Shown here: piece by piece, positions 3,608 to 57,350 of the stretch
Numbering within the stretch: position 1 is the stretch's first letter
Layout: every line of letters begins with the position of its first letter
Virus record (IMG/VR): IMGVR_UViG_3300047548_001122
Location: 124,001 to 188,000 of that record
Direction: 5' to 3' (one strand)
Length of the DNA stretch: 64,000 nt
Position numbers and translations under genes: made by a program
The notes under the pieces: model-generated
What the model saw: the letters and a program-made list of their open reading frames with translations, nothing else
What the model was told of the DNA's origin: nothing
Database searches by the model: none

Positions 3608-3805
3608 ATGAATATTTCACAATTTATAGATGACGTTGTAGCTGGCAATGCTTCTGCAGCAAAGGAAACCTTAAATGATATCCTTTCAGCAAAAGCTTTT
3701 GAGAATATTGACAATCAGAAAAAAGAACTTGCAAAGTCTCTTTTTGGTGGTAATCAAGAAGTAGAAGTTCAAGATACCGAAGATCAACTAGAAACAGAAG
3801 AATGA
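3608..3805 (+). CDS. gp67: Small acidic prohead core protein (gp67-like)
   Basis: Position after gp20, size, acidic tail; GGAG RBS before ATG 3608. Confidence 0.7.
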   Translation: MNISQFIDDVVAGNASAAKETLNDILSAKAFENIDNQKKELAKSLFGGNQEVEVQDTEDQLETEE

Positions 3806-40822: not shown

Positions 40823-41212
40823 ATGGCATATTCAACTCAAGTATTAGATCATTACGAAAATCCTAGAAACGTAGGTAAATTTGATATAGGTGATGAAAGT
40901 GTTGGCACAGGATTAGTAGGTGCTCCAGCTTGTGGTGACGTTTTGAAATTGCAGATAAAAGTAGAAGATAATATTATCACTGATGCGAAATTTAAAACAT
41001 ATGGTTGCGGTAGTGCTATTGCTTCGTCATCATTAGTAACTGAATGGGTCAAAGGAAAAACACTTGAAGAAGCGGGTGCAATTAAGAACACTGAAATTGC
41101 AGAAGAGTTAGCTCTACCACCAGTAAAGATACATTGTTCAATCTTAGCTGAAGATGCTATTAAAGCAGCAATCAAAGACTATCAAGATAAAAACTTAACA
41201 AAGGCTGCATAA
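40823..41212 (+). CDS. iscU: Fe-S cluster scaffold IscU
   Basis: DHYENPRNVG, GAPACGDV, FKTYGCGSAIASSS, LPPVKIHCS (three Cys + His). Confidence 0.97.
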   Translation: MAYSTQVLDHYENPRNVGKFDIGDESVGTGLVGAPACGDVLKLQIKVEDNIITDAKFKTYGCGSAIASSSLVTEWVKGKTLEEAGAIKNTEIAEELALPPVKIHCSILAEDAIKAAIKDYQDKNLTKAA

Positions 41213-41503: not shown

Positions 41504-42337
41504 ATGAAAGATTTGATTATAGGATGTTCCACCAACTACGATTGGTCTAAGTTAAAATATTGGATCAATTCTATCAATGCATCAGGATTTGAAGGTGATA
41601 AAATCCTGATTCTAATGAACTGTGATGCTGAAACAGTTAAAAAAATTACAGAAGCAGGTTTCGGTGTAATTGGATTCAATCAAGATGAACAAGGTAATTT
41701 GAGTTATAGTTCTTCAATGCCTGTCCACACCGAAAGATTTTTACACATCTACAATTATTTAAAAGACAGAGACTATCGTTATGTAATCACAACCGATGTT
41801 AAAGATGTTGTCTTTCAAAAAAATCCTATCGAATATCTTGAAGCGGAATGTATTTCTAAAAATCTAATTTTTGCTTCCGAAAGTATCAAGTATAAAGACG
41901 AACCTTGGGGTGACCAAAACCTAAAAGAAACTTTTGGTCCATACATCTACGAACAGTTTAAGAACAATGAAATCTTCAACGTTGGTGTTTTGGCTGGTCA
42001 CGGCTACGCTATTCGTGATTTAGCTTTGAACATTTTTGTCGCTAGTTTAAATCGTCCTATTCCAATTTGTGACCAATCTACGTTTAATTTCCTCATTAGT
42101 CAAAACCCTTACACCTCATTGAGTAAGTATTGTTTCTCTGAAGATGGTTGGGCTGCACAACTAGGAACAACAGGTGATCCATCAAAATCTGCACAATTCG
42201 ATCCTTTGTTACTCGAAGAGAAACCAAAATTTGATGGTAATATTGTAACTACATCAAAAGGTAAAGAATTCTATATTGTACACCAATATGATAGAGTTCC
42301 AGAAATGAAAAAGGTCATTGAGGAAAAATTTGCATGA
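41504..42337 (+). CDS. GT-A-like glycosyltransferase
   Basis: YVITTDVKDVVFQ (DxxD), FNVGVLAG, DQSTFN, HQYDR. Confidence 0.6.
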   Translation: MKDLIIGCSTNYDWSKLKYWINSINASGFEGDKILILMNCDAETVKKITEAGFGVIGFNQDEQGNLSYSSSMPVHTERFLHIYNYLKDRDYRYVITTDVKDVVFQKNPIEYLEAECISKNLIFASESIKYKDEPWGDQNLKETFGPYIYEQFKNNEIFNVGVLAGHGYAIRDLALNIFVASLNRPIPICDQSTFNFLISQNPYTSLSKYCFSEDGWAAQLGTTGDPSKSAQFDPLLLEEKPKFDGNIVTTSKGKEFYIVHQYDRVPEMKKVIEEKFA

Positions 42338-43290
42338 AACGTCTATTGTTTGTAGTTCATCGTTATGCTCCTTATCCTGGCGGTTCTGAAAATTATGTCA
42401 GAGATATGGCCGAAGAATGTGTTCGGAGAGGACATGATGTTTCTGTTTTCACTGGCGAACACAAAGGCGATTTGAATGGAGTAAAAGTTACATCAGACGT
42501 AAATATTCTAGGTCAAAAGTTTGATCTCATTATCGTTCATGGCGGCGACGTTGGCTTACAAAATTTAGTATTGATGAACGCAGAAAGAATACCTTCACCA
42601 ATACTATTCATGATTATAAAACCATCCGAAAGTCCTGTTTATATTCATGCGATGAACACCGTAAAATACCTAGGATGTTCTGCACCAGAGGATTATGAAT
42701 TATTGAAAAAACATAATCACATGAATAAGTGTGTTAGAGTTATTCATGGTATAGATGAAAAGATATCAGTTGGTATGACAGGTTTTAGAGAGAAGTATGG
42801 TATAGAAACAAAATATATGTTTTTATCGTGTGGAGGTTTCTGGCCAAATAAAGCAATGAATGAACTCGCACAAATATTCAATGATATTGGAAGAGATGAT
42901 GCTACGCTAGTATTAACAGGTTATGATAACAGACATAACATTCGTCCAATTGATACGAAATATGTTAAGACATTTATGATAGAAGATAGAGAAGATGTTT
43001 TGTCGGCCATTCGTGATGCAGATTTATACATTATGCATTCCTTCAGTGAAGGGTTTGGTTTAGTTCTTCTAGAGTCTATGTTAAATAAAACTCCTTGGGC
43101 TTCTAGAAAAATTGCTGGTGCTAATTTAATGAGTGAGTTTGGATTTACATACGAAAATGACCATCAACTTAGAGAATATATTTTAGATTTTGATGGTAAT
43201 AAAGATGCACAAATAGAAAATGCATATGAGTATGTAACATTAAATCATATGATAAAAAATACAGTTGATGATATTATGAGGTTAGTATGA
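42334..43290 (+). CDS. GT4 (GT-B) glycosyltransferase
   Basis: YPGGSE, ADLYIMHSFSEGFGLVLLESM (EX7E). Confidence 0.85.
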   Translation: MKRLLFVVHRYAPYPGGSENYVRDMAEECVRRGHDVSVFTGEHKGDLNGVKVTSDVNILGQKFDLIIVHGGDVGLQNLVLMNAERIPSPILFMIIKPSESPVYIHAMNTVKYLGCSAPEDYELLKKHNHMNKCVRVIHGIDEKISVGMTGFREKYGIETKYMFLSCGGFWPNKAMNELAQIFNDIGRDDATLVLTGYDNRHNIRPIDTKYVKTFMIEDREDVLSAIRDADLYIMHSFSEGFGLVLLESMLNKTPWASRKIAGANLMSEFGFTYENDHQLREYILDFDGNKDAQIENAYEYVTLNHMIKNTVDDIMRLV

Positions 43291-43922
43291 ATTTTACTTT
43301 TGGTATTCTTACAAAATACGATGATGAAGAAAAACTAAAAGAAGTTATAGACTCGATACACAATCTAAACATTCCGGAAAATGGTGGTGATTATCAAGTT
43401 TTGGTAATAGGCGAAAAGAAAGTAGAAGGATCAAAATATGAGAGGTACATTTATTTTGATGAAACTGCCAAACCAGCCTGGATAACCAAAAAGAAAAATT
43501 TATTGGCTCGTGCCGCAAATTTTCAAAACATTGTTTTAATGCACGATTACTTTGTTTTTGATAAAGATTGGTATAAAAACTTTTTAGAGTTTGGAAATGA
43601 TTGGGACATTTGTTCTTGTCCACAATATCTAATAAACGGTAAACGACATTTTACCGATTGGGTTTGTTGGGATTCACCTTTATTTCCGAGATATACTTCA
43701 TTACATTATGATGATTGGTCACATGTGAATTACATGTATCAATCTGGCGGTTTCGTTGTTGCAAAAACACAGTTGATTATTGATAATCCATTCAATGAAC
43801 AATTAGGTTGGGGTCAAGCTGACGATGTTGAATGGTCTCTCCGAGTGAGACATAGATACAAGTATGTTTGTAATGGAAAAAGTATAGTGAGACATAATAA
43901 GGTACATCGTGATGCGAAATAA
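43287..43922 (+). CDS. GT-A-like glycosyltransferase
   Basis: ITKKKN..A, IVLMHDY, WGQADDVEWS. Confidence 0.65.
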   Translation: MNFTFGILTKYDDEEKLKEVIDSIHNLNIPENGGDYQVLVIGEKKVEGSKYERYIYFDETAKPAWITKKKNLLARAANFQNIVLMHDYFVFDKDWYKNFLEFGNDWDICSCPQYLINGKRHFTDWVCWDSPLFPRYTSLHYDDWSHVNYMYQSGGFVVAKTQLIIDNPFNEQLGWGQADDVEWSLRVRHRYKYVCNGKSIVRHNKVHRDAK

Positions 43923-45282
43923 ATTAATTATATTTGACTTAGATGGTGTTTTGATTGAATCTAGAGAATTGCATTATCACGCTCTTAATGATGCATTAAG
44001 AAAAGTCGATGAACGTTATGTAATTGACCGAGAAGAACACCTCAGTGTTTATGATGGTTTAAACACCACTAGAAAACTTGAAATGTTGACCGAAAGAAAA
44101 GGTCTGCCTACGAGTTTCTACGATCAAGTATGGCAAGATAAACAGTCAGCAACTTTTGAATTAATCAAACAGTTTCCAAAAAATCCAACCTTAATAGAAT
44201 TTTTCAGTAGTCTAAAATCGCAAGGTATAAAAGTTGCCGTTGCAAGTAACTCTATACGTGAAACGGTAAAGCTTGCTTTAATATCTATAGGTGTGTTAGA
44301 ATATGTAGATTACTTTGTAAGTAATGAGGATGTTAGGAGACCCAAGCCATATCCAGAGATGTATTGGCAATGCATGACCGTTTTAAATGCATTGCCAAAA
44401 ACTACAGTTATCTTTGAAGATAGTCACATTGGTAGAGAGGGTGCTTTAAATTCTGGAGCTCACTTAATTCCATTAAAAGATTCTTTTGATTTGACCAAAG
44501 ACAAAATAGACGATGCGCTTGATATATTAAATGGAATTAAAAAAACAAATATACCATGGAGAAATAAAAAAATGAATGTATTGATACCAATGGCAGGCGC
44601 AGGTAGTAGATTTGCTGCAGCAGGTTATACTTTTCCAAAACCTCTAATCGAAGTTCGTGGAAAACCAATGATTCAGGTTGTTGTGGAAAATCTTAATGTT
44701 GAAGCGCACTTCATTTTCATTGTACAAAAAGAACACTACGAAAAGTATAATCTAAAACAATTGTTGAATCTTATTGCTCCAGGTTGCGACATAATCCAGG
44801 TTGACGGTATAACAGAAGGTGCTGCGTGTACAACATTACTCGCAAAAGAACTTATTAATAACGGTGAACCTCTATTGATGGCAAACTCGGATCAATTTGT
44901 TGAGTGGAATTCCAATGAGTGTTTATATGCATTTACTGCTGATACTATCGATGGTGGTATAGTTACTTTTGAAGCCACGCATCCAAAGTGGTCTTTTGCT
45001 AAATTGGATGAAAATGGTTTTGTTTCAGAAGTTGCGGAGAAAAAACCAATCTCGAATATTGCAACGGTAGGAATATATTATTGGAAACAAGGTAGCGATT
45101 ATGTTAAGTATGCTGAACAGATGATACAGAAAAACATTCGTGTCAATAATGAATTCTATGTTTGTCCAGTATTTAATGAAGCAATTGCCGATGGTAAAAA
45201 GATAAGAACCAAACATATCGAAAGAATGTGGGGAATAGGAACACCAGAAGATTTAAATTACTTTTTGGAGAACCATAAATGA
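43909..45282 (+). CDS. HAD phosphatase fused to sugar nucleotidyltransferase
   Basis: FDLDGVL, VASNS, KPYPE, FEDS; then IPMAGAGSRF...PKPLI, ANSDQ, GTPEDL. Confidence 0.88.
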   Translation: MMRNKLIIFDLDGVLIESRELHYHALNDALRKVDERYVIDREEHLSVYDGLNTTRKLEMLTERKGLPTSFYDQVWQDKQSATFELIKQFPKNPTLIEFFSSLKSQGIKVAVASNSIRETVKLALISIGVLEYVDYFVSNEDVRRPKPYPEMYWQCMTVLNALPKTTVIFEDSHIGREGALNSGAHLIPLKDSFDLTKDKIDDALDILNGIKKTNIPWRNKKMNVLIPMAGAGSRFAAAGYTFPKPLIEVRGKPMIQVVVENLNVEAHFIFIVQKEHYEKYNLKQLLNLIAPGCDIIQVDGITEGAACTTLLAKELINNGEPLLMANSDQFVEWNSNECLYAFTADTIDGGIVTFEATHPKWSFAKLDENGFVSEVAEKKPISNIATVGIYYWKQGSDYVKYAEQMIQKNIRVNNEFYVCPVFNEAIADGKKIRTKHIERMWGIGTPEDLNYFLENHK

Positions 45283-46007
45283 GAGTTGCTGTCGTATTGA
45301 CCGGACACCTAAGGTGCTGGAAACAAGTGTTTCCGAATTTTAAAGAAAAAGTAATTGATCGATATAACCCAGATATATTCATTCATACTTGGGATGAAGA
45401 AGGCTGGTGGATACCTGGTGATAAACAAAATGAAAAAGGTTTCTTTGAGGGTACACCTGAGATTGTAGATCAAGAAGTGATTGATGCTTACAAACCTTTA
45501 TACTTTGTAAAAGAATATTGGGACGATTTTAATCAACACTTCGAACAGTGTGGAACTTATTTTAAAAACTTCGCACACAGACCAAAAAATATACTTTCGA
45601 TGTATTATAAAATGCATCAAGGATTTTCTTTGGTTGAAAAACATCTGGCACAACTACAGGGAAATTATGATCTAGTCATTCGTATGCGACCAGACATGGT
45701 TTTTCATGAGGATCTTCCTGATTTTAATATGGGAACTTTCTATACTATTGCTCACAGAAATCATCTAGGTCAAGGAACTGGAGATTTGATGCAAGTTGGT
45801 AGTGTGGGACAAATGTTATTCTTTACAAAAATTATTTGTTTTATTTCTGAATTATATAAACAAACAGACTTATTATGTCCTCATGTTATAACTGAACAAC
45901 ATATAACAAATTTAAGATTGAACTGGAAAGAATTTAATATCAACAAAACTTTAATGCATACGCCGAAGGGTGCTTATGTAGAAATGGATAAAATAAATGC
46001 TGAATGA
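45279..46007 (+). CDS. Glycosyltransferase-like hypothetical protein
   Basis: VAVVLTGHLR, FIHTWD, YDLVIRMRPD. Confidence 0.55.
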   Translation: MRVAVVLTGHLRCWKQVFPNFKEKVIDRYNPDIFIHTWDEEGWWIPGDKQNEKGFFEGTPEIVDQEVIDAYKPLYFVKEYWDDFNQHFEQCGTYFKNFAHRPKNILSMYYKMHQGFSLVEKHLAQLQGNYDLVIRMRPDMVFHEDLPDFNMGTFYTIAHRNHLGQGTGDLMQVGSVGQMLFFTKIICFISELYKQTDLLCPHVITEQHITNLRLNWKEFNINKTLMHTPKGAYVEMDKINAE

Positions 46008-46671
46008 AATTTTAAAATTAGATGATGGTCCAATTAAGTATGAGCCAAGTGGCCGTGGACATATTAAGATGGTGGGACATTCTGTGCCATACAGTATTAT
46101 GCAAAAAGAATTTGATTTTTTACATAATATCATTGTAGAAAATAATTTACAAAGAGGTTTCGAATTAGCCACAGCATTCGGTATTTCCGGTACAGCAATA
46201 GGCACAGCTTTCAAAAAAACAGGTGGAAAGTTTGTAACCATGGATGCGTATATTGAAGAGAAGTATGATAACGCAGGAACGTATGAACATTTCCAAAAAG
46301 AAGTTTATGAAAAGTCTGATGGATATAAAAGTGTAAATTATCTCATAGATAAATTTGAATTAAGAGATACGATGTTTGCTGAAATTGGTTGGTCTCCAGA
46401 CGATGTTGACAGTATAGTTGGAAAACATTTCACGGAAAAATTAGATTTTGTATTTTTGGATGCTGGACATTTTGGCGACCAGATGATTAAAGATATTAAA
46501 GAAATAAATAAACACTTAGATGAAAAATTTGTTTTTGTGTTCCACGATATTTACCCTTGGAGTTGCACACAAGAAGTTCATAATCTGTGTATAGAATTGT
46601 TTGGAAAAGATATTGATATTAAACTTCCTTATCCGGAAGGAGAAAATTTAGGCATAATTTCATGTTTATAA
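45997..46671 (+). CDS. Class I SAM-dependent methyltransferase (Methyltransf_24-like)
   Basis: FELATAFGISG, DFVFLDAGH, VFHDI. Confidence 0.72.
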   Translation: MLNEILKLDDGPIKYEPSGRGHIKMVGHSVPYSIMQKEFDFLHNIIVENNLQRGFELATAFGISGTAIGTAFKKTGGKFVTMDAYIEEKYDNAGTYEHFQKEVYEKSDGYKSVNYLIDKFELRDTMFAEIGWSPDDVDSIVGKHFTEKLDFVFLDAGHFGDQMIKDIKEINKHLDEKFVFVFHDIYPWSCTQEVHNLCIELFGKDIDIKLPYPEGENLGIISCL

Positions 46672-47126
46672 TTTCACATAGAGCTAATTTAAACGGTCCA
46701 GACCCATCAATCGAAAATAAACCTGAATCAATTGTTCACGCTATCGATCAGGGATTTTCGGTTGAGGTTGATCTTCGAATGAAAGATCAAAAACTATATT
46801 TTGGACATGATGAAGCTCAATATGAAACTGATATTAATTTTTTAAAGAAGTACAAACAATATCTATGGATTCATTGTAAAGAAATGGAAACCATGGAGTT
46901 TTGTCTTGAACAGGCTCTACACTGTTTCTGGCATAACGATGATGATTATACACTGACAAATTACAGATATGTCTGGGCATACCCCGGAAAAGAACCTGTC
47001 GGCAAACTAACGATAATGGTGATGCCAGAAAGGCACTGGAGTCCAGAAGAAACCCTATCAAAAAAACCATTTGGAGTATGCACAGACTACCCTTATGCGT
47101 ATCAAGATATTATAAATAAGAGATAA
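46662..47126 (+). CDS. PLC/GDPD-like phosphodiesterase
   Basis: ISHRAN..G, EN, VEVDL, FGHD, WIHCK, GVCTDY. Confidence 0.7.
   Translation: MFIISHRANLNGPDPSIENKPESIVHAIDQGFSVEVDLRMKDQKLYFGHDEAQYETDINFLKKYKQYLWIHCKEMETMEFCLEQALHCFWHNDDDYTLTNYRYVWAYPGKEPVGKLTIMVMPERHWSPEETLSKKPFGVCTDYPYAYQDIINKR
47111..47118 (+). promoter_or_regulatory. Late promoter TATAAATA for the internal-protein cluster
   Basis: Exact consensus 34 nt upstream of ATG 47152. Confidence 0.8.
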
Positions 47127-47151
47127 AATAACACTGCTGTAGAGGCGGAGA

Positions 47152-49896
47152 ATGAAATTTAAAGACTTTCTAACAGAAAAGAAAGAAGTACATGCCGTAA
47201 TGGCCTTTGGGAGAATGAATCCCATAACTTCTGGCCACGAAAAATTAGTCAACGCTGTCAAAAAAGTTGCTGCCAAAGTTGGCGGTTCACATATTATCGC
47301 ACTATCACATTCTCAAGACCCAAAGAAAAATCCTCTCACAGCCGCACAAAAAGTCAAATACGCCAAAGGTGCATTTCCTGGCACAAATTTTGTTGCTGCA
47401 TCTAAAGACGCACCTACATTCTTTGAACACGCCGAAAAACTATACAAACAAGGTGTAACACATTTACATATGATTGGTGGTTCTGATCGCGTAGAAGAAT
47501 ATAACAAATTACTTCACAAATATAATGGCACACATAAAGGTGCTCGTTTCAATTTTAAAACCATCGAAGTACATTCTGCTGGTGAACGTGATCCTGATGC
47601 AGATGGCGTCGAAGGAATTTCTGCAAGTAAGATGCGTGAGGCAGCAAGTAAAGGAGACTTTAATACTTTTAAGAAAGGTGCTCCGTCAACAATGTCAGTC
47701 GATCTAATGAAACAAATGTATAAAGATGTACGCAAAGGTATGAACCTTAAAGAAAGTATTAATGAAGAATTTGAAGAACTTTTGATTGAAGGTGTTCACG
47801 ACAAAGGTATTTTTAAAGCTGTATTTTTAGCAGGTGGTCCAGGTTCAGGTAAAGATTATGTATTGAGTAATACACTTGATGGTCATGGTTTAACTGAAAT
47901 CAATTCTGATAAGGCTTTAGAATTTTTAATGGACAAAAAAGGTCTCGATAAAAGAATGCCTGCAAGTGAAACGGAAGCTAGAGATAAAGTTAGAGCTAAA
48001 GCAAAAAATGTTACAGAGCTTCGTCAAAGACTTGCATTACAAGGAAGAAATGGACTAATCATTAATGGTACTGGTGATGATGTTGAAAAAGTAACAAGAA
48101 TCAAATCTAAGTTGGAAGAATTAGGTTACGACACTTCAATGATTTTAGTGAATACGAATGATGAAGTATCTGCTCAAAGAAATATTGAACGTGGTCAAAG
48201 AGGTGGTCGCACAGTACCAGAAACCATTCGTAAAGAAAAATGGGACAATGTTCAAAATGCTCGTACTGAATATGCAAAACTTTTTTCTAATAATTATATG
48301 GAGTTTGATAACTCCGAAGATTTGAGACAAGCTCCTCCTGATGTTGTTAAAAGTAAAAAAATGGAGATGATGCAACTGTTTAAAAACGTACAACAGTTTG
48401 TTGCACAACCTCCTCAATCACCTGCTGCACAAGAGTGGGTAGCAAATGAATTAGAACAAAAAGATACTCTTAAACCACCAAAAAATGGTGTTGAACAAGT
48501 TGTACCACATGGTTCGAGTGCAGCAGAAGAAGCCAGAAAATTAGGATTACAATATTATGGTTTCGGTAGATATGGTAAAAACGGAAAAACTACACACCGT
48601 TCCATTCATGATAAACTTGTACAAGTTACTGATAAAAAACCAGAACAACCTAAACTACCTACACCTGGTTCTTCACCAATTTCAAACAAAAAAAATGTTT
48701 CAGAAGAAATTAATATTGATGAAGAATTTAACGAAATGCTTGATTCTTTAGATGAAGATTTACGTAAATGGTTTGACCCAAAACATCCAGAAGGTGGTTG
48801 GAAAAGAATTAACTCTAAAGGTGAAGCTATAGGTCCTTGCGCTCGTGAACCAGGTGAACCAAAACCAAAATGCATGTCAAACGAAAAGAGAGCTAAGTTG
48901 AGTAAACAAGAAAGAGCTTCTGCTGTTGCTGCAAAACGCAAACATGATCCTATTGCAGATAGATCGGGTAAAGGTGGTAAACCAGTAAACGTTTCCAATT
49001 TTGGAAAAGGTAAATTGTCTGAATCTGTAACAGTTTCAATTACTGGTGATACTGTTGATGAAGTTAAAGATTTCTTCAACACAATGGGATCAAATTTAAA
49101 TACAACTACAGAACAATATGCATTATCAGATTCCAAAAAAGAATTGATAACTCTGGGTAAATTTACTCAACCATTTGGTGAGAAAATGGAAAATACCACC
49201 ATTACAAATGATATGGTTGAAAATATGCTTGAACAGAAAGAACCTAATTTACTCAAAGACAAGAGTGGTAAAGTTAGGGTATTCATGTTAAGATCGGTAG
49301 CGGCTAAAGAAGCTCATACAAGTCAAGGTACAGTTTTAAAGTATAAAAACGGTTATGTCGTTAAACTAAAAGAGGAGATTGAAGATGTTGAAGTTTATAA
49401 AGGAACTATTCGGAATTGGATTGAAGAATCCAGAAAAACATGGATTGGAGGGAGCAACCAGAGCACCCAACGAGGACTTCTCACAGAGAGTGGAACAATA
49501 TCAAACGGAAGTTCCGAAGGTAGAGGAACCGAAAGTAGAAGAATTGAAAGTGGAGAAACCAAAGAAGAAACAACCATCCAAGAAGCCTGCGAAAATAACT
49601 CCACAACCGCAACCAAAAAAATCACCCTCGCAGAAATCAAACAGAGGCAGAAAGCCAAACACCAAAAACAAATCGACGAAATAGATCGAGGTATTGAACC
49701 TGGCATATCAATGGCTGGTGCTGGCGAAGGCATCGGCCGTGATATGGGTGAAAAAATTAAAAAAAGGTCACATAAAGTTACTGTTGTTGAATTAACTGGT
49801 GATGAAACAACAGCATCTATTGGTGACCAAAAAGAAGATGAGTTAAAGAAAAAAGGTATCTCACTAACTACATTTAAAAAGAGAAACTACATATGA
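47152..49896 (+). CDS. Modular putative internal head protein: HIGH nucleotidyltransferase + Zeta/AAA_33-like P-loop kinase + small modules
   Basis: MKFKDFLTE; FGRMNPITSGH; LIE|GVHDKG..AGGPGSGKD..GGRTVPE; EEINIDEE and SLDE|DLRKWF linkers. Confidence 0.7.
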   Translation: MKFKDFLTEKKEVHAVMAFGRMNPITSGHEKLVNAVKKVAAKVGGSHIIALSHSQDPKKNPLTAAQKVKYAKGAFPGTNFVAASKDAPTFFEHAEKLYKQGVTHLHMIGGSDRVEEYNKLLHKYNGTHKGARFNFKTIEVHSAGERDPDADGVEGISASKMREAASKGDFNTFKKGAPSTMSVDLMKQMYKDVRKGMNLKESINEEFEELLIEGVHDKGIFKAVFLAGGPGSGKDYVLSNTLDGHGLTEINSDKALEFLMDKKGLDKRMPASETEARDKVRAKAKNVTELRQRLALQGRNGLIINGTGDDVEKVTRIKSKLEELGYDTSMILVNTNDEVSAQRNIERGQRGGRTVPETIRKEKWDNVQNARTEYAKLFSNNYMEFDNSEDLRQAPPDVVKSKKMEMMQLFKNVQQFVAQPPQSPAAQEWVANELEQKDTLKPPKNGVEQVVPHGSSAAEEARKLGLQYYGFGRYGKNGKTTHRSIHDKLVQVTDKKPEQPKLPTPGSSPISNKKNVSEEINIDEEFNEMLDSLDEDLRKWFDPKHPEGGWKRINSKGEAIGPCAREPGEPKPKCMSNEKRAKLSKQERASAVAAKRKHDPIADRSGKGGKPVNVSNFGKGKLSESVTVSITGDTVDEVKDFFNTMGSNLNTTTEQYALSDSKKELITLGKFTQPFGEKMENTTITNDMVENMLEQKEPNLLKDKSGKVRVFMLRSVAAKEAHTSQGTVLKYKNGYVVKLKEEIEDVEVYKGTIRNWIEESRKTWIGGSNQSTQRGLLTESGTISNGSSEGRGTESRRIESGETKEETTIQEACENNSTTATKKITLAEIKQRQKAKHQKQIDEIDRGIEPGISMAGAGEGIGRDMGEKIKKRSHKVTVVELTGDETTASIGDQKEDELKKKGISLTTFKKRNYI
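49385..49684 (+). CDS. Nested out-of-frame gene, small Lys/Pro-rich protein
   Basis: GAGGAG 7 nt before ATG; MLKFIKELFGIG amphipathic start and KKQPSKKPAK tail; wholly inside 47152..49896. Confidence 0.55.
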   Translation: MLKFIKELFGIGLKNPEKHGLEGATRAPNEDFSQRVEQYQTEVPKVEEPKVEELKVEKPKKKQPSKKPAKITPQPQPKKSPSQKSNRGRKPNTKNKSTK

Positions 49897-50420
49897 AGTC
49901 ATTTACTCAATTCATAAACGAAGAAGTTGAAATTCTGGATGAAATGCCTGGTGCCAATATGGACACCAGAGCGGTTCATCAACATCTGAAAAAACAAGGA
50001 TGGAAATTAACCAGAAGTTCTGGCAATCATGATGTGTTTACTCATCCAGATGCTAAACATCACATTCCCGTTCCTCGTCACAAACAATTGAAAGCTCCTT
50101 TAGTTCGTGGTATCTTAAAACAAGCTAAAGTAAATGAAGAAGTTGAATTGGATGAAACTGCTGCATGGCAACGTAAAGAAGGTAAAAATCCTGAAGGTGG
50201 ATTAAACCGTAAAGGTATCGAATCGTATCGCCGTGAAAATCCTGGTTCTAAACTATCGATGGCTGTAACTACTCCTCCATCAAAACTAAAACCAGGTTCA
50301 AAGGCTGCAAAGAGAAGAAAATCCTTTTGTGCAAGAATGGGTGGTATGCCTGGTCCAATGAAGGATGAAAAAGGTCGTCCAACAAGAAAAGCATTATCTT
50401 TGCGTAAATGGAACTGCTAA
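49893..50420 (+). CDS. Putative internal protein: HicA-like RNase module + C-terminal basic module
   Basis: MKSFTQFINE; HLKKQGWKLTRSSGNHDVFTHP..IPVPRH..LVRGILKQA; EEVELDE linker; RRKSFCARM. Confidence 0.75.
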   Translation: MKSFTQFINEEVEILDEMPGANMDTRAVHQHLKKQGWKLTRSSGNHDVFTHPDAKHHIPVPRHKQLKAPLVRGILKQAKVNEEVELDETAAWQRKEGKNPEGGLNRKGIESYRRENPGSKLSMAVTTPPSKLKPGSKAAKRRKSFCARMGGMPGPMKDEKGRPTRKALSLRKWNC

Positions 50421-51719
50421 ATGGCACAGTTTAGAACCGACAAAAACATTATCGATTCGGGTCAAGTATTTACTCGATATGAGATAATGATGTTATCTGA
50501 TAGGCTGACACCATCTGGTACAGCCACAGATGCGTTCGGTCGTTTACGTGTTGCTGAACCACATACTCTTTTTGATTCACAACATCAAGACGTTGAAAAT
50601 GATAAATGGGATACACTCATTACAGGTTCGGGCACCAAAACACATTTACCAAATGAATCTGTAATTGCTTTAGAAATTGGTACTGCAAATAACGATGGTA
50701 TTATTCGTGAAACACTAAGAACAATGCCATACCAACCAGGCAAATCATTGTTGATTATGAGCACATTTGCTATGGGACAACCAAAAGCGAACGTTGTTCA
50801 GAGAGTAGGATATTATGGAGCAAATAACGGAATTTATTTTGAAAACGATTCTGGAAATAACTATGTTGTATTAAGAAGTTCTGTTACAGGAAATGTTGTA
50901 GAAACTAGAGTTGCACAAACAAATTGGAATGTGGATAAATTTGATGGTACGGGATATTCGAGTCAGGGAACAGGACCAGAACACGTTGATGGAATAAATG
51001 TAAACAAATCAAATCTTTTTTGGATTGATATTGAATGGCTAGGCGTTGGTGATGTTCGATGTGGTTTTTTGAATGACGGCCTATTAAAAACTGCACACAT
51101 ATTTCATAACGACAATAAAAACAATACAACTTATATGCGTAGTGCAATTCAACCATTGCGATATGAAATATTTAACAAAGGTGTTACAACATCAAATACG
51201 CTGATGCGTCAAATTTGTTCTACAGTCATATCCGAAGGTGGTTATACACAAATTAATCAATCAAGGTCAGCATCAAATCCTTTGGCTGGTAAAAACTTAA
51301 CTGTTAGTATTAATAACCCAATGGTAAGCCTTCGGTTAAAAAATGGTAGAACAAATGCTGTCGTTGTACCTGTTGCAATTGATATGTATGGATTACAAGC
51401 AACAGCATTTAAATATAGAGTGTATGAGAATGTCACAAGTTTAACCGGTCCATCATGGGTTACAACCGACGCCGCAAGTGCAGTTGAGTATGATATATCG
51501 GCAACGGCAATGACTGGTGGAACTTTACTTAAAGAAGGTATTTTCAAAGGATTAGAAGTTGCAAAAGAAGTTAATTTGTTACAACTATTAGATGGTGTTA
51601 TACAACTAACAAGAAAAATAAATGCAAACACTGGCGACATATTCACGGTTGCAATAGAACCAACAACAAACAACGATGATGCTATCGTAGCATTATCATG
51701 GCAAGAACACATTAATTAA
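50421..51719 (+). CDS. Putative virion structural protein (beta-rich)
   Basis: DAFGRLRV..PHTLFDS, YQPGKS, WLGVG.VRCGF; late cluster. Confidence 0.55.
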   Translation: MAQFRTDKNIIDSGQVFTRYEIMMLSDRLTPSGTATDAFGRLRVAEPHTLFDSQHQDVENDKWDTLITGSGTKTHLPNESVIALEIGTANNDGIIRETLRTMPYQPGKSLLIMSTFAMGQPKANVVQRVGYYGANNGIYFENDSGNNYVVLRSSVTGNVVETRVAQTNWNVDKFDGTGYSSQGTGPEHVDGINVNKSNLFWIDIEWLGVGDVRCGFLNDGLLKTAHIFHNDNKNNTTYMRSAIQPLRYEIFNKGVTTSNTLMRQICSTVISEGGYTQINQSRSASNPLAGKNLTVSINNPMVSLRLKNGRTNAVVVPVAIDMYGLQATAFKYRVYENVTSLTGPSWVTTDAASAVEYDISATAMTGGTLLKEGIFKGLEVAKEVNLLQLLDGVIQLTRKINANTGDIFTVAIEPTTNNDDAIVALSWQEHIN

Positions 51720-51734
51720 AAATAGGAGACTCAA

Positions 51735-53141
51735 ATGTTTCAAGACAAACTAACAAGAGAAATTGCTGCAGCTGCTGCACAAATCAAAACAGAACCACCA
51801 AAGAATGAAGTTAATTCTGAGTCTGTTGAGGGTGCAGTCGTTTCTGTTATGACGAATGAAGAACTAAAAGGCAATCAACACAAGATTGATGCTAACAAAA
51901 ACGGCAAAGTTGATGCACATGACTTTAAACTTCTTCGTGCCAAGAAAGGTAAAACGGTAGAAGAAGGCATTAAAGGTGCTGGTATAGGTGCTGCTGTAGG
52001 TTCTGTTGCTGGTGGACCGATTGGTGCAGCAGTTGGTGGTGCTTTGGGGCATGTAGCAGGTGAAGTTCTATCAAGTGCTAAGAATAAAACAAAAGCTATG
52101 TATCGTATTGCAAAAGGTCCTTCGATGGCCGACAGCAAAATAAAGAAAGAAGAAGTTGAAGAACTCGATGAATTGTTTGGAAAAGGTAAATTACCAGCAA
52201 TTGCAGCATATCACAAAGAAAAAGGTGCTGAAGCTAAAGGTAAGATGGAAACAATTAGAAGTGGTAACACTAAACTTCCTGTTCCAAAATCTACATCTGC
52301 TAAAATCTTTTCTAAAGATGCTGAAGCTAAATATCATTCAACTCAGGAGAAAAGAGCAAAATCTTTGATGAAAAAAGAAGAAGTTGAATCCGTTGAAGAG
52401 GGATTTGGTGATCTAGTTAAAGGTATTAAACGTGTCGTTGCCGGTAAAAAGAGTCCTAGTGCCGTAAGAGATGCACACTTAGCAAAATCTGCTTTTAGTA
52501 CAGATCCGAAAGTTAAAGAGCGTGAAGGTCGCCGTTACGATAAAGTGGATAACTTCATGATGAAAAAAGAAGAAACGGAATTGGATGAAGCCTTTCCAAC
52601 TGTAGCTGATGCTAGAAAACGTATGGCTGCAAAAGAAAGTGGTTTCGAGAAAAAGAAAATTTCTACTGGTACAGTTTACTCACGTAAGTATAAGGCAGAA
52701 CCAGAAGAGAATGATGAAGCGCCAAAGAAAAAGGCCAAGACCATGAAAGAAATGTTGAGTATCTATTCAGCAGGTGGCGCCGAAGCTTTGGTAGAAAATC
52801 TCATGATCGAAGAACCATCACAAGATGAATATAAAAAGGAAGTTGAAACTGCTCAGGCAAAAGCTGACGGTAAAATTCGTAACGATAAAGGTATAGCTAA
52901 AGCAGCATCACAGGGTGTAAAGATGGAAGAAGTTGAAATTGAAGTTCTTGATGCAGATGAAATCAATGGAGTTCAGATTGACAATATTGAAGAGCGCCAC
53001 ATGACTGATGCTGAAATGGATAAACGTGAAGAAATCGTTAAGTCAATGAAAAAAGGTATTCAAGGTTTCAAAGATCGTTATGGCGATAAAGCAAAAAATG
53101 TAATGTATGCTACTGCAACCAAATTGTCCAAAAAGGATTAA
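51735..53141 (+). CDS. Modular putative internal head protein
   Basis: Repeated KKEEVEELDE / KKEEVESVEE / KKEETELDE linkers separating basic modules. Confidence 0.6.
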   Translation: MFQDKLTREIAAAAAQIKTEPPKNEVNSESVEGAVVSVMTNEELKGNQHKIDANKNGKVDAHDFKLLRAKKGKTVEEGIKGAGIGAAVGSVAGGPIGAAVGGALGHVAGEVLSSAKNKTKAMYRIAKGPSMADSKIKKEEVEELDELFGKGKLPAIAAYHKEKGAEAKGKMETIRSGNTKLPVPKSTSAKIFSKDAEAKYHSTQEKRAKSLMKKEEVESVEEGFGDLVKGIKRVVAGKKSPSAVRDAHLAKSAFSTDPKVKEREGRRYDKVDNFMMKKEETELDEAFPTVADARKRMAAKESGFEKKKISTGTVYSRKYKAEPEENDEAPKKKAKTMKEMLSIYSAGGAEALVENLMIEEPSQDEYKKEVETAQAKADGKIRNDKGIAKAASQGVKMEEVEIEVLDADEINGVQIDNIEERHMTDAEMDKREEIVKSMKKGIQGFKDRYGDKAKNVMYATATKLSKKD

Positions 53142-53143
53142 AC

Positions 53144-54571
53144 ATGAAGAAGATGTCTGACGTTTTCAAATCCATTCGTTTTGCCAAAATGGACCCAAAA
53201 CACGATAAGCCCGAAATTGGTGGTTCGAAAGATGACGAGGAACATTATACTGTTGGTGAAAAGGAATATGAACAACAGGTAAAACATGTAAAAAAGCGTG
53301 CTATGCAAGAAGAAAAGAAAGACAAATATGATGAAGGTGAATATGACCGAGAAGGCGATATGGCTAAATCTGATCTTCGTTCTATCATTGCAAATGCAAA
53401 AAGATTGCATGATATGATCGAAGATTCGGCTAACCTTCCTGAATGGGTGCAGTCTAAAATTACTGTTGCTGAAGATTATATTTCTACAGTTGCTAATTAT
53501 ATGACATCAGAAATGAGTGAAGGGGTATCTGATAAGTTGTACAAATCTCATCAAGATTTGCGTAAGAAGAGTGGGTTACCTCATCCCGATTACTACAAAG
53601 CATTAGGTAAATCTTATGACATTGAAGATGATAAAGAACGCCTTACACATCAATCTGAATTAAAGAAAAAATATGGTGTGAAAGAAGAGGTTGAACTTGA
53701 AGAGTCCTCTAAATTTGCAAAAATTTTTGATAAGAGAGTCAAACAAAGAGAACTCAATAAATTACCTAAAGAACCAAAAGGTGAATATGAACGTAAAGTG
53801 GACAAGTATTTGAAGAAGAAATATAACAAAGAAGAAGTTGAACTTCAAGAAGGTCGTCCATCACAACGCCATCCATTAGAGGGTCATGAGTATCACAAAA
53901 AGTCTAATGAAGAATTGATTGGTATTGCTAAAGATGCACATGCGGCTGCTGAAGCAATGAAGGGTCACAGTACCAGAGCAGAAAACAAATATCGTGACCA
54001 AGCAAATGATTCTGCAACAGTACGTTATTTCCGACAAAAGAGTGGTATGCCTGACTGGTACAAAAAGAAGTATGGTCATGTCAAAGAAGGAGTAGAACTT
54101 GAAGAGGGTTTACAACAAACTCTTAGAAAAGTTGTTCCTGGTTATGCAAAGAAACAAATAAACGATAAAATGGACCGTGAAAAGTTTGGTAGAAGAGATG
54201 TGGATAAAGACGAGAATTATTATCGTTATAAAAAAGTCCTCGACAAATTAAAAAAAGAAGATGTTGAACAATTAGAAGAAAAGAATGTTCCAACTTCTCC
54301 AGAAAAATGGGCTCAAGCCAAAGCACAAGCAAAGGCCAAGTTTGACGTTTATCCTTCTGCCTATGCAAATGGTTGGGCTGCAAAGAAATATAAAGCAATG
54401 GGTGGTGGTTGGAAATCAGTCAGTGAAGAATCTATTTTAGAGTCTCGTAAGGCTGAAATTGTCAAAAAGATAGTTAAGAGTAAAAAAACTAATAGTGATG
54501 ATAAATTTGAACCTAACCCTATCATGTCGAAAGATGAAGATAGGGGCAGAGATAACATAAATAACAAGTAA
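53144..54571 (+). CDS. Modular putative internal head protein
   Basis: Repeated KEEVELEE / KEEVELQE / KEGVELEE / KEDVEQLEE linkers. Confidence 0.6.
   Translation: MKKMSDVFKSIRFAKMDPKHDKPEIGGSKDDEEHYTVGEKEYEQQVKHVKKRAMQEEKKDKYDEGEYDREGDMAKSDLRSIIANAKRLHDMIEDSANLPEWVQSKITVAEDYISTVANYMTSEMSEGVSDKLYKSHQDLRKKSGLPHPDYYKALGKSYDIEDDKERLTHQSELKKKYGVKEEVELEESSKFAKIFDKRVKQRELNKLPKEPKGEYERKVDKYLKKKYNKEEVELQEGRPSQRHPLEGHEYHKKSNEELIGIAKDAHAAAEAMKGHSTRAENKYRDQANDSATVRYFRQKSGMPDWYKKKYGHVKEGVELEEGLQQTLRKVVPGYAKKQINDKMDREKFGRRDVDKDENYYRYKKVLDKLKKEDVEQLEEKNVPTSPEKWAQAKAQAKAKFDVYPSAYANGWAAKKYKAMGGGWKSVSEESILESRKAEIVKKIVKSKKTNSDDKFEPNPIMSKDEDRGRDNINNK
54556..54563 (+). promoter_or_regulatory. Late promoter variant CATAAATA
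   Basis: One mismatch to consensus, upstream of AGGAG RBS of 54596. Confidence 0.5.
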
Positions 54572-54595
54572 AAACAATTTTTAGGAGAAATAAAA

Positions 54596-54934
54596 ATGCC
54601 TTTATTTTCAGCAACAGATGCAAACACCGGTGCCCCAAAATGGGCAGTAGCTAGTGGTCTTGGTGTGTCTGCAAATGGATTTACATTATATGCAAACACC
54701 ACTTCTGGTGCATACGTAAGTGGCGCAGCAGTTGGTGTTTTTGGTGTTAACGCAACAGAAATCGGTCTAGCAAATAATGCCTTAAATAAACCAGCACATA
54801 CTGGTTGGGTATTAAGAACGCAAGGTACTGGTGGTCGTGCAGGTCGTATTCAAACTGAAGTTCTTGTAGCCGGCGGTATGAGTGCTGACACTTCAGCAAC
54901 AGCTAACGACAACGTTGTTTACGCCAATACCTAA
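54596..54934 (+). CDS. Putative small virion protein
   Basis: AGGAG RBS; HTGWVLRTQGTGGRAGRIQTEVLVA. Confidence 0.55.
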   Translation: MPLFSATDANTGAPKWAVASGLGVSANGFTLYANTTSGAYVSGAAVGVFGVNATEIGLANNALNKPAHTGWVLRTQGTGGRAGRIQTEVLVAGGMSADTSATANDNVVYANT

Positions 54935-55353
54935 TGAGATACGAGGACGATAGCATCGAATCTGCTTCGACACCTAAAACCATTCAGGCAGGTCAAGCAA
55001 TCGATGCACATGAACCATCAGGTGAGGATTCAATCTCAGCATTGAATCCGAACGTGATTACTGAAATCAATTTCAGACTCAGAAATGAACTGAATGAAAT
55101 ATTACTCAATGCCGATCAAGGTATTCAAAAAATAAGAAAGACCTTGCATCGGTATGGGTTTGATTTACCTGCTATTTACGAGGCAGATAGAGAAGGTGAT
55201 GAACTAGTCATTGAATTAAATCAATTTGGATTCGATGATATAGAGAGTAATATATACATTTTGTATTATATGACTGATAAAGGAGTTTATGAGTTTTATG
55301 CTGAAATTGGTGATGACGAACGTATGGATGAACTATTGTCCGACGGTATTTAA
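54934..55353 (+). CDS. Acidic hypothetical protein
   Basis: TAATG coupled ORF. Confidence 0.55.
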   Translation: MRYEDDSIESASTPKTIQAGQAIDAHEPSGEDSISALNPNVITEINFRLRNELNEILLNADQGIQKIRKTLHRYGFDLPAIYEADREGDELVIELNQFGFDDIESNIYILYYMTDKGVYEFYAEIGDDERMDELLSDGI

Positions 55354-55364
55354 AAAGAAAAATA

Positions 55365-55757
55365 ATGGTTTTTGATAATTTGACTAGTGAAAATATAATG
55401 CTTTATGCAATGAAGATTTATGATAGACCAGATTGCATCATGAGTGAGTTTAAAGAAGATATGAAACGATTCAACTATTTAAAAAGGTTGTTTCGTAGGT
55501 ATAGAAAAATAGGTGAAATAAAAGAACGTTTAGTTCTGAATCACTTGGTTGTTCTTTATAACGTTTTTGGTGCTGAAGCAATGACCAGAATGTTATTTTT
55601 TAAAATGTCAAAAGATGACCTACCAATAGTAAAAACATATCTTTTATTTTTAAGTTGTATGCCAGAAATTGTAAAGGGTATAAAAGGACAAGATATACTT
55701 TCTTCCGATATACCTGTTGATTTAAAGATAGCTGAAGTTTTAAGAGAAATAAAATGA
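55365..55757 (+). CDS. Conserved T4-like hypothetical protein
   Basis: EF.EDMKRFNYLKRL, RLVLNHLVVLYNVFG. Confidence 0.65.
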   Translation: MVFDNLTSENIMLYAMKIYDRPDCIMSEFKEDMKRFNYLKRLFRRYRKIGEIKERLVLNHLVVLYNVFGAEAMTRMLFFKMSKDDLPIVKTYLLFLSCMPEIVKGIKGQDILSSDIPVDLKIAEVLREIK

Positions 55758-55981
55758 CCAACGAATTTAAAAAACAATGTGGTGAAGGAATGTATTGGTG
55801 CAACACTGATAAAAAGTGTAAACCAATACAGGAAGATATGCCCACAAATAATGCTGGAGGTGGTGCTGTTGCAGGCATTGGTGTTGGTCCACAAGGTGAA
55901 CCTGGTATAAACAAAAAGAAAAAAAGAAATTTAATCCCTTTAATGGCCTTTATGAGAAGAAAAGCAAATGTGGCTTCTTAG
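55754..55981 (+). CDS. Small hypothetical protein
   Basis: ATGA coupled; CGEGMYWC, EDMPTNNAGGG. Confidence 0.5.
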   Translation: MTNEFKKQCGEGMYWCNTDKKCKPIQEDMPTNNAGGGAVAGIGVGPQGEPGINKKKKRNLIPLMAFMRRKANVAS

Positions 55982-56483
55982 TTTTTTATCGACAGAGTTT
56001 TTGGAGTATGTTGTTAATTCAGTATTGATTTTGGGTATTGTTGGTACTATCGTAGGATTTTTTGGCGGCAAAATACCTTTTGTCGGGTCTTATTTAAATA
56101 TTATTAAATATGTTTCTATTGTTCTATTCTGCATTGGTTTATATTGGAAAGGTGGAATGAGTGTAGAAAAAGAATGGCGTCAAAGAGTTGAAGAGATGGA
56201 AGCAAAAGTAAGAGCTGCCGAAGAAAAGTCAAAAGAAGTAAACACTGAAATAGAAACGAAAGTAGTTCAAAAAACTAAAGTAATCAGAGAAAAGGGTAAG
56301 ATACAGATTGAATATATCAATCGTTTAGTTGAAGGTAAAACGGTTGAAATCGTAAAAGATATGAGTGCAGAAGAAAGAGCAGTTTTTGAAGCAAAACAAA
56401 AAGAATTATTAGATTCAATCAAAAATTGTCCAATACCTAGAATTATTATAGAAGAACATAATAAAGCGACAGAATCAAAATGA
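55968..56483 (+). CDS. i-spanin (Rz)-like membrane protein
   Basis: N-terminal TM segments, periplasmic coiled coil, C-terminal Cys; precedes a lipoprotein. Confidence 0.65.
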   Translation: MWLLSFLSTEFLEYVVNSVLILGIVGTIVGFFGGKIPFVGSYLNIIKYVSIVLFCIGLYWKGGMSVEKEWRQRVEEMEAKVRAAEEKSKEVNTEIETKVVQKTKVIREKGKIQIEYINRLVEGKTVEIVKDMSAEERAVFEAKQKELLDSIKNCPIPRIIIEEHNKATESK

Positions 56484-56746
56484 AATCATACACTATTTTA
56501 TTAAGTTTATTACTTGTTGGTTGTTCGACAACTGTACCTGTCGTAGCAAAGTTTCCAGAAGCACCAAAATCTTTAACAGAAAATTGTTCACCGTTGAAAA
56601 AAATAGACGGTGAAACTGTTTCTATTGTAGATTTGCACAAAGTTGTGGTTGAAAATTACACCACACATCATGAATGTGCCATAAAGGTAGAATCTTGGAA
56701 TGAATGGTATATTAAACAGAAACAAATATTTGAGGAAATAAAATGA
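56480..56746 (+). CDS. o-spanin (Rz1)-like lipoprotein
   Basis: Lipobox LLVG|C, Pro-rich FPEAP, two further Cys; ATGA overlap with i-spanin. Confidence 0.7.
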   Translation: MKSYTILLSLLLVGCSTTVPVVAKFPEAPKSLTENCSPLKKIDGETVSIVDLHKVVVENYTTHHECAIKVESWNEWYIKQKQIFEEIK

Positions 56747-57096
56747 AATATTTAATGATTGCAGTATTATCAATTTCTTTAATGGGTTGTACTACTATTA
56801 AAAAATATTGGCCAAGAGATCATGACCCCGTTATGTTTAGTCAGTTAGTTGAAATTGATAGAATGGTTGAAATGGTAGATTGTGAAAATCCTGATTGGCG
56901 TATGGCTGAAAATTTAAGTTCACATTTATCCAGATATACTGAATGGCGTCAAGACCCACAAGCGGAAAATATTAAAGGTTTACATTCTCATACTGTTCGT
57001 ATGAGTAAAGGTGGCAGTAAAACGTTTTGTGAACTCGGTAAAAAAACTGCTGCACAAAGAATACAAGCAGCTAAAAGTGCATGGGAGGGAAGATAA
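56743..57096 (+). CDS. Lipoprotein
   Basis: Lipobox SLMG|C. Confidence 0.65.
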   Translation: MKYLMIAVLSISLMGCTTIKKYWPRDHDPVMFSQLVEIDRMVEMVDCENPDWRMAENLSSHLSRYTEWRQDPQAENIKGLHSHTVRMSKGGSKTFCELGKKTAAQRIQAAKSAWEGR

Positions 57097-57284
57097 TGCA
57101 TCCATTAGAACAAGAAATACAAGCTCTTAATGAAGCTTATGAAAACGGTGATATAGACCGAAATGAAAGAGATTATTTGTTGCTCGAAATCAGAGATATT
57201 AGAGCAGCACAAGAATGTGCAGGTGACGAACAATTAGCAAGACAAATATTTCAAGCCTGCAATATAGCAATGGCAGTACTTTAA
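57096..57284 (+). CDS. Small hypothetical protein
   Basis: TAATG coupled, 62 aa. Confidence 0.5.
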   Translation: MHPLEQEIQALNEAYENGDIDRNERDYLLLEIRDIRAAQECAGDEQLARQIFQACNIAMAVL

Positions 57285-57288
57285 AATT

Positions 57289-57336
57289 ATGCAACAGGAA
57301 TCTTGTCCTATTTGTGGTGGCAAACATAAAAAATAA
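57289..57336 (+). CDS. 15-aa micro-ORF MQQESCPICGGKHKK
   Basis: Fills the gap between 57284 stop and endolysin RBS; CxxC..H motif. Confidence 0.35.
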   Translation: MQQESCPICGGKHKK

Positions 57337-57350
57337 AGGATGAATTATCT

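Follow-up and report, generated by a model that had tools for sequence, protein, structure and literature searches.

A candidate capsid-targeted enzyme polyprotein in a freshwater T4-like phage

What is the role of a long phage protein in which a nucleotidyltransferase, a kinase and several small modules follow a leader of nine residues? The question is raised by a gene in viral record IMGVR_UViG_3300047548_001122, which is 214,237 bp long with direct terminal repeats. The window, meaning the whole stretch of DNA analysed, is 64,000 nucleotides (nt) in length and corresponds to bases 124001–188000 of this record. The source phage is a T4-like myovirus from freshwater. Loading of enzymes into the capsid is the most likely role, because a T4 head-targeting signal precedes a string of enzymes and modules. 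With moderate confidence, we consider the 914-amino-acid protein to be a capsid-targeted cargo polyprotein that is cut by a gp21-type protease and delivered with the DNA. An earlier note, made from the sequence alone, had placed a late-expressed open reading frame (ORF) here; both the ORF and its late promoter are found:

47111–47118, + strand: T4-type late promoter motif TATAAATA, lying within the final codons of the preceding gene
47152–49896, + strand: ORF of the putative cargo polyprotein, 914 amino acids, 101.6 kDa, isoelectric point 9.1, its stop overlapping the next start (ATGA)

More than 5000 database proteins match the 914-amino-acid protein (E≤1e-5), with identities of 58–91% for relatives over the full length, and the coding sequence is therefore real. 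The promoter motif and the ATG are 33 nt apart, and GAGG/GGAG lies in this interval. The motif is no more frequent than chance predicts (4 copies in the window, 7.7 expected from shuffles), yet its placement is non-random: of the 7 copies on the + strand of the genome, 5 lie 30–44 nt 5′ of ATG ORF starts, among them that of the scaffold gene (binomial 1.5e-7). Promoter and terminator scans of positions 46000–58000 gave counts at or under chance. The gene seems to head a late operon, because the next four genes follow with no promoter motif or gap and include one for a virion structural protein, phrog_1645.

Leader, linkers and predicted processing

The leader at the start of the ORF recurs on two further genes of the same genome:

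47152–47178, + strand: leader, residues 1–9 (MKFKDFLTE), aromatics at positions 3 and 6, then L7-x-E9
49893–50420, + strand: next gene, 175 amino acids, translationally coupled, leader MKSFTQFINE, then a HicA-like domain, an EEVELDE linker and DUF6321
39320–40549, + strand: DUF6267 protein (380 bits), leader MKFLDFLVE

In T4 IPIII, residues 4 and 7 (Y4/F7) act in targeting and residues 8 and 10 (I8/E10) in processing, and the gp21 cleavage motif is L/I-x-E (PMC9026906). The T4 record gives MKTYQEFIAE as the start of internal proteins (IPs) II and III and MKTFKEF as that of IPI. MKFKDFLTE, which the earlier note had called targeting-like, keeps all four determinants of this T4 capsid targeting sequence (CTS) in the spacing of IPIII (F3/F6, L7/E9), one residue shorter, and MKSFTQFINE stands in the exact register of MKTYQEFIAE. 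All 120 of 120 full-length homologues (58–100% identical) start with M-[KRNT]-F-x-[DEN]-[FY]-[LI]-x-E, and the leader is also present on 107 of 111 short transferases. A strict form of the pattern is met in 3 of the 295 + strand ORFs of the genome, namely the three listed above. The leader is carried by four unrelated proteins in the genome and is, to judge from these starts, portable.

The predicted processing enzyme is encoded in the window:

5435–6085, + strand: gp21-type prohead protease (family match to Peptidase_S77), the presumed processing enzyme

The phage's own gp23 keeps LTE followed by A around the position of the T4 gp23 cut between LTE65 and A, and we infer an L/I-x-E specificity for the Peptidase_S77 protease. 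The leader would bind the polyprotein to the prohead scaffolding core, as the T4 CTS does. The gp21-type protease would then cut after the glutamate of L/I-x-E, removing the leader at LTE9, and would very likely separate the modules at LKE201, LIE213, LDE535, LSE624 and LKE741. The products would remain beside the DNA inside the head and exit together with it on infection, and would therefore already be present in the host ahead of all phage gene expression. Packaging is likely, and internal cleavage somewhat less so.

The chain to be cut is organized as follows, with borders and model confidence (predicted local distance difference test, pLDDT) given for each part:

47179–47754, + strand: HIGH-superfamily nucleotidyltransferase, residues 10–201, pLDDT >90, TSGH at 47227–47238 and GISASKMR at 47614–47637
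47755–47790, + strand: acidic interdomain linker, residues 202–213, invariant LIE213 before GVHD, a putative protease site, pLDDT <50 at residues 207–212
47791–48471, + strand: P-loop kinase of the Zeta/AAA_33/PNK clade, residues 214–440, P-loop GGPGSGKD (residues 228–235) at 47833–47856
48502–48636, + strand: module a, residues 451–495, a small helix and beta-sheet unit with invariant GL-YYGFGRYG, pLDDT about 88, no fold match
48757–49023, + strand: module b, residues 536–624, basic (isoelectric point 10.1), with the cysteine pair GPCAREPGE-KPKC, matching phrog_727, phrog_12753 and phrog_23735
49249–49374, + strand: module c, residues 700–741, a small beta-alpha-beta unit ending with conserved LKE741, pLDDT about 88
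49669–49893, + strand: module d, residues 840–914, conserved C-terminal D-GIEPG-SMA...GDETT-SIGD, low-confidence model

The AlphaFold model of residues 1–440 was built on 86 sequences and has a mean pLDDT of 90.7, with both enzyme domains at about 91; residues 207–212 form its sole stretch with pLDDT below 50. The linker around this stretch reads F-E-E-L-L-I-E213 before G-V-H-D, and F207, L210, L211 and E213 are conserved. By its sequence it looks like the leader of a stand-alone kinase. Stand-alone kinases (227–240 amino acids) start with M-K-T-F-x-E-L-x-E or M-L-x-F-K-x-F-...-E, and a glutamate directly precedes the invariant G-x-x-D domain start in 64 of 68 of them. Stand-alone transferases of about 203 amino acids have their own leader and end with ...Y-K-D-V-R-K-G-M-G-x-K-D at the point where the linker of the fusion starts. 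In Pelagibacter phage HTVC008M the two enzymes are encoded by adjacent genes in reversed order.

The C-terminal half (residues 441–914) is mostly disordered and basic, with an AlphaFold mean pLDDT of 55, and holds the four small conserved modules. Pfam (E up to 5) and NCBIfam searches of it gave no credible match, and an exhaustive VIA search gave Z≤3.4. Conserved LDE535 and LSE624 mark the two edges of module b; it is also found as a stand-alone phage protein family, and elsewhere is fused to DUF6321 (phrog_23735, phrog_727). The earlier note's further modules between acidic xxE linkers were confirmed: outside folded domains, hydrophobic-x-E is kept in at least 80% of 47 relatives at eight sites (E9, E201, E213, E535, E624, E741, E779 and E880), and the 914-amino-acid protein has 15 [LI]xE against 9.4±2.8 in shuffles (p about 0.04). 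Relatives P0043, P0084, P0032 and P0104 carry extra modules of 195–260 amino acids within the variable linkers, and one such module lies after the transferase in some relatives and after module a in another. An acetyltransferase was suspected among these extra modules; a Pfam search of them gave no family.

Homologues of the transferase have been detected by mass spectrometry in purified virions of three cyanophages. In purified S-SM1 virions a 'citidylyltransferase' of cluster T4-GC190 was detected, and this cluster is core in all 16 cyanomyoviruses compared (Sullivan et al. 2010; PMC3037559). S-SZBM1_140 is the sole enzyme in the S-SZBM1 virion proteome (PMC9146016). S-CREM2 gp154 was also detected in virions, and the authors remark that kinases and cytidyltransferases are often detected in cyanophage virions (PMC10665884). 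Two of the virion-detected cyanophage genes are 41% and 35% identical to our transferase domain (E 5e-31 and 3e-22), and their products start with MRFRQFIIE and MKNFSSFLTE. The virion papers on PA5oct and RaK2 do not mention a transferase homologue, and among the papers searched we found none linking the CTS to cyanophages or pelagiphages, nor one linking a targeting leader or proteolytic processing to the phages with virion-detected transferases. The earlier note had proposed gp21 processing into enzymes injected with the DNA. The processing of packaged enzymes gains comparative evidence and the virion proteomes of homologues, and ejection into the host, which we infer, is drawn by analogy with the T4 IP and Alt proteins.

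Alternatively, the protein could be a cytoplasmic auxiliary enzyme, neither packaged nor cleaved, that acts in NadR-like NAD salvage or as a CoA-synthase-like PPAT plus dephospho-CoA kinase, with the leader being a mere helix. This is unlikely. Each stand-alone module carries the leader, as do unrelated folds; homologues are present in purified virions of three phages, and the gene is placed late among virion genes. What the domains themselves say for and against a cytoplasmic enzyme is taken up below.

The enzyme domains and their possible chemistry

Residues 7–208 match the phage 'cytidyltransferase' families phrog_3041 (E 4e-64) and phrog_395 (E 3e-49). Against a cut-off of 21, Pfam CTP_transf_like scores 18.2 bits by hmmscan, and 20.7 in a six-frame search or 21.2 with neighbouring stretches included. 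Invariant in 37 diverged sequences are T26-x-G28-H29, K59-N-P-L62, G110-S-D-R113 and G155-x-S-A-S-K-M-R162, and the HIGH-superfamily motifs T26-S-G-H29 and I156-S-A-S-K-M-R162 are present on the modelled fold. The active site looks intact, because these catalytic motifs are invariant across diverged sequences. The model aligns with PPAT over 153 residues (Z 14.2, root-mean-square deviation (rmsd) 3.1 Å) and with NadM and archaeal NMN adenylyltransferases at Z 12.6–13.4 (NadM 13.2–13.4). The domain that the earlier note had described as NMNAT/PPAT-like is thus present and, in the model, is tied between the two families. The family profile finds PPAT only among solved sequences, at E 0.009, through G-x-x-(N/D)-P-I-T-x-G-H and K-K-N-P-L, and an Atlas look-alike search returned viral 'cytidyltransferase' clusters only. 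The genome has two further CTP_transf_like genes, which are ordinary stand-alone ones. From its motifs the transferase would join a nucleoside monophosphate (NMP) to a phosphorylated small acceptor.

The kinase with its GGPGSGKD loop directly follows LIE (residues 211–213), as the earlier note had read it, and its Zeta likeness passes the family cut-off: residues 222–370 score 46.8 bits with Pfam Zeta_toxin (PF06414; cut-off 22.3) and 33.7 bits with AAA_33. Invariant in the family are K234, S252-D253 and a lid-like motif R343-N-x-x-R347...R353. The structural neighbours are an uncharacterised kinase, 2rhm (Z 15.8), archaeal PSTK (15.3), Clostridium thermocellum polynucleotide kinase (15.2–15.7), Zeta toxin (13.8–13.9), T4 Pnk (13.4), Kti12 (13.3), AvrRxo1 (13.1), Pnkp1 (12.9), adenylate kinases (11.5–13.2), dephospho-CoA kinase (11.0) and NadR with both domains taken together (11.0). 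Profile comparison gives E 7e-7 for adenylate kinase, 9e-7 for Zeta and 3e-3 for T4 Pnk, and the central segment I-I-N-G-T-G...G-Y-D-T-x-M aligns with Zeta. The phosphate-binding arginine that NMP kinases have in G-D-L-L-R is replaced by an invariant Ser-Asp...Glu in this family; this points to a hydroxyl group rather than a phosphate as the probable acceptor.

Zeta_toxin being the best Pfam family, the kinase might be a toxin of the Zeta, PezT or AvrRxo1 type that phosphorylates a 3′-OH of UDP-GlcNAc or NAD and shuts down the host, with the transferase unrelated or supporting. The Z-scores of Zeta and AvrRxo1 and a next gene with leader and HicA toxin-like domain agree with such a role. However, PF06414 is a broad kinase family, and polynucleotide kinase and PSTK rank higher in the structure comparison; we regard a toxin as improbable.

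Those same neighbours lead to the proposal of RNA end-healing, one of two activities suggested by the earlier note. A packaged 5′-OH polynucleotide or tRNA kinase would heal ends cut by host anticodon nucleases or RNases, with DUF6267 sealing them. The top named neighbours of the kinase (PSTK, C. thermocellum Pnk, T4 Pnk, Kti12 and Pnkp1), the invariant Ser-Asp after strand 2 with the R-N-x-x-R...R motif, and DUF6267 with its invariant K-W-D-G and shared leader all fit. On the other hand, there is no 3′-phosphatase domain, the I-I-N-G-T-G...G-Y-D-T segment aligns best with Zeta toxin and not with polynucleotide kinase, and the profile match to T4 Pnk falls behind those to adenylate kinase and Zeta. 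DUF6267 showed no relation to T4 Rnl2 or any solved chain, no ligase was found, and the HIGH-type transferase is left without a role. Of this proposal the kinase's structural kinship stands, and the healing pathway as a whole is doubtful.

The other suggestion was a NadR-type pairing for NAD salvage, which leads back to the cytoplasmic enzyme. In Foldseek the best matches over two domains are NadR chains (6gyf, E 1.6e-7), NMNAT models give weak NCBIfam matches, the transferase is matched best by PPAT both in profile and in Z, and NMNAT and dephospho-CoA kinase figure among the automatically assigned source names. Against this, the kinase reaches only Z 11.0 with NadR, and the same with dephospho-CoA kinase, versus 15–16 with polynucleotide kinase and PSTK. 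The NadR model nadR_NMN_Atrans (TIGR01526) scores 16.1 bits where the cut-off is 341, no gene of the NAPRTase or Nampt families is found in the 214-kb genome, and in cyanophages the transferase occurs without this kinase partner. The list of Foldseek matches also includes ATP sulfurylase/APS kinase fusions, and the NadR match mostly reflects a generic pair of HIGH transferase and P-loop kinase. The pairing holds at the level of domain order, and the kinase lies nearer to polynucleotide kinase, PSTK, Zeta and AvrRxo1.

A further alternative is that the protein has a structural or scaffolding role inside the head, its enzyme-like domains being relics that have lost activity. The long disordered basic C-terminal half and the virion gene neighbourhood are in agreement with it. 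Degenerate catalytic residues, which would mark a relic, are not seen: diverged relatives all keep HIGH, ISxSxxR, the P-loop lysine, Ser-Asp and the lid arginines, and both folds are modelled with confidence. A relic is therefore very improbable.

For the chemistry we commit only to what the motifs suggest, a transferase acting on a phosphorylated small acceptor and a hydroxyl kinase, both delivered pre-made, because Zeta/AvrRxo1-type and CoA-synthase-like readings are equally compatible with the data. By CoA-synthase-like logic, the transferase would make a dinucleotide and the kinase would phosphorylate its ribose hydroxyl. The leading, though tentative, candidate for the enzymes' target is a cofactor of nucleotide type or a dinucleotide, resembling NAD or dephospho-CoA; for the kinase, a nucleic-acid 5′-OH comes second as the main alternative. 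It is a rather unlikely extension that the pair makes or modifies a dinucleotide cofactor or signal as the DNA enters, blunting NAD-depleting or nucleotide-signalling immunity before transcription, and that aquatic T4-like phages load shuffled beads-on-a-string enzyme polyproteins by means of the leader and the protease. Examples would be the rebuilding of NAD, or a 3′-phosphorylated NAD-like or CoA-like compound.

Several points weigh against the cargo polyprotein as proposed. The S-CREM2 authors caution that virion preparations may contain proteins carried along by sheer abundance, and the kinases reported in cyanophage virions are APH/ChoK-like (PMC10665884); the polyprotein's kinase family is not reported from any virion proteome. 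L/I-x-E is very short and modestly enriched, and some of the conserved sites may be intrinsic to the modules. The borders of the C-terminal modules were drawn from conservation alone, because this half is modelled poorly. DNA nearly identical to the locus was found in freshwater DNA metagenome runs only, with 0 RNA runs. The Walker A change from Ser/Thr to Asp is unusual, though invariant in the fusion clade. The structural Z-scores of the families that compete for the substrate assignment differ by less than 2.

Neighbouring genes and distribution

Downstream of the polyprotein gene, the 49893–50420 product matches HicA with 49.7 bits, its G-N-H motif present, and DUF6321 with 82.5 bits. As read from its sequence, it would be a packaged HicA-like RNase domain. 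The genes that follow are:

50421–54571, + strand: rest of the apparent late operon, the phrog_1645 virion structural protein and two modular proteins

The latter two, of 468 amino acids (51735–53141, + strand) and 475 amino acids (53144–54571, + strand), consist of short modules joined by (K)KEEVEL-x-E, and one has a glycine-zipper. Three genes downstream of the polyprotein gene contain six E-[VT]-E-(x)-L-x-E linkers, a word found nowhere else in the 214-kb genome.

DUF6267 adjoins the transferase in cyanophages and the pelagiphage and is fused to it in phrog_455. The order in S-SZBM1 and HTVC008M is gp41 helicase, at least one gene, DUF6267, transferase (with the kinase in HTVC008M) and virion proteins, and the gap from DUF6267 to the transferase in relatives ranges from about 2 to more than 6 kb. 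The leader is present on all freshwater DUF6267 proteins and absent from that of S-SZBM1. An RNA/DNA ligase was considered for DUF6267 on account of its K-W-D-G; hhalign against T4 Rnl2 gave a probability of 0.4%. The DUF6267 profile against all PDB sequences returned coiled-coil noise only, and an Atlas feature search returned unnamed viral clusters; the ligase idea thus gained no support.

In the present genome a sugar-modification island (41504–47126, + strand) separates DUF6267 from the 914-amino-acid gene. It encodes two glycosyltransferases, a fusion of HAD phosphatase and sugar-phosphate nucleotidyltransferase, and a methyltransferase. A phage-encoded NifU/IscU-like iron-sulfur scaffold protein (40823–41212, + strand; Pfam NifU_N, 175.9 bits) lies between DUF6267 and the island. 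Just after the gp41 helicase gene is a gene with a DruA-like domain (36978–38093, + strand; Druantia protein DruA, 38.9 bits, cut-off 27).

The T4-like setting is given by the head genes and the replication genes:

1920–3596: portal
at 6119, + strand: scaffold gene, with its own TATAAATA upstream
7214–8554: major head protein
30903–33458: gp43 polymerase

UvsW, gp46/47 and the gp41 helicase are also encoded. Leader-like starts, MKSLNEFKNLVE and MKLINLILE, are observed on 3802–4617 and 4614–5060 (+ strand), between portal and protease; by sequence, these products are compatible with prohead core proteins of the gp67/gp68 kind. Directly 3′ of the major head gene, and preceded by TATAAATA, lies a probable homing-endonuclease-like gene (8664–9251, + strand) with weak NUMOD3 and I-HmuI NUMOD-like matches under the cut-offs. 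Its position recalls that of segD after gene 23 in T4.

The nearest cultured relatives for the 914-amino-acid gene are Pelagibacter phage HTVC008M and Methylophilales phage Melnitz. The Walker A sequence ends with Lys-Asp in the freshwater and marine fusion clade and with Lys-Ser/Thr in the HTVC008M/Melnitz clade. In about 460 cyanophage records, as well as jumbo phages of the RaK2/121Q type, the transferase domain occurs by itself. The family is very abundant, with more than 5000 cluster representatives in aquatic metagenomes.

Significance and comparison with known systems

If the cargo polyprotein is true, the T4 head-targeting signal works far outside coliphages and loads real enzymes beyond small inhibitor proteins. 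Since the transferase is core in T4-like cyanophages, the pre-loaded activity probably matters in the first minutes of infection of environmentally dominant phage-host pairs. The leader together with L/I-x-E offers a simple sequence rule by which the ejected proteins of uncultured T4-like phages could be predicted, and natural variants of leader and linker are usable for packaging proteins in T4-type capsids.

Among enzymes of like architecture, NadR has a HIGH transferase followed by a P-loop kinase in the same order. However, the polyprotein has no helix-turn-helix domain, and the relative orientation of its domains is off, with an rmsd of about 20 Å. PPAT and the bifunctional CoA synthase share T-x-G-H and K-K-N-P-L and, in PPAT, provide the best Z and the best profile match, yet the profile E is modest and the kinase has nearer structural neighbours than dephospho-CoA kinase. 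The kinase shares with Zeta/PezT, AvrRxo1 and the polynucleotide and PSTK kinases the fold, the P-loop, an Asp after strand 2, the G-T-G segment and the lid arginines. It differs from the Zeta/AAA_33 clade in its Walker A Lys-Asp in place of Lys-Ser/Thr; no phosphatase partner was seen, nor an antitoxin, for which no search was made.

As to packaged proteins, the ejection proteins of giant phages (SPN3US and the phiKZ group) are, likewise, many head-internal proteins cut by a prohead protease at a short x-x-E and delivered to the host. They belong to another phage lineage with another cleavage motif, and the likeness is one of description. The virion 'cytidylyltransferase' of cyanophages (T4-GC190) is alike in its catalytic domain, the kind of leader, and synteny by DUF6267 downstream of the gp41 helicase, but comes without the kinase and with other C-terminal extensions. 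T4 IPI, IPII, IPIII and Alt share the short leader with aromatics three apart and then L/I-x-E, the gp21-type protease and late expression, and Alt is a precedent for an enzyme as cargo, although it is an ADP-ribosyltransferase. Each IP is one small protein and Alt loses only its ends, whereas here a 914-residue chain of at least six modules with leader-like linkers is known from sequence. The CTS-targeted internal proteins and Alt of T4 and the virion-associated cytidylyltransferase of cyanophages are already known, and the 914-amino-acid protein is a variant of these.

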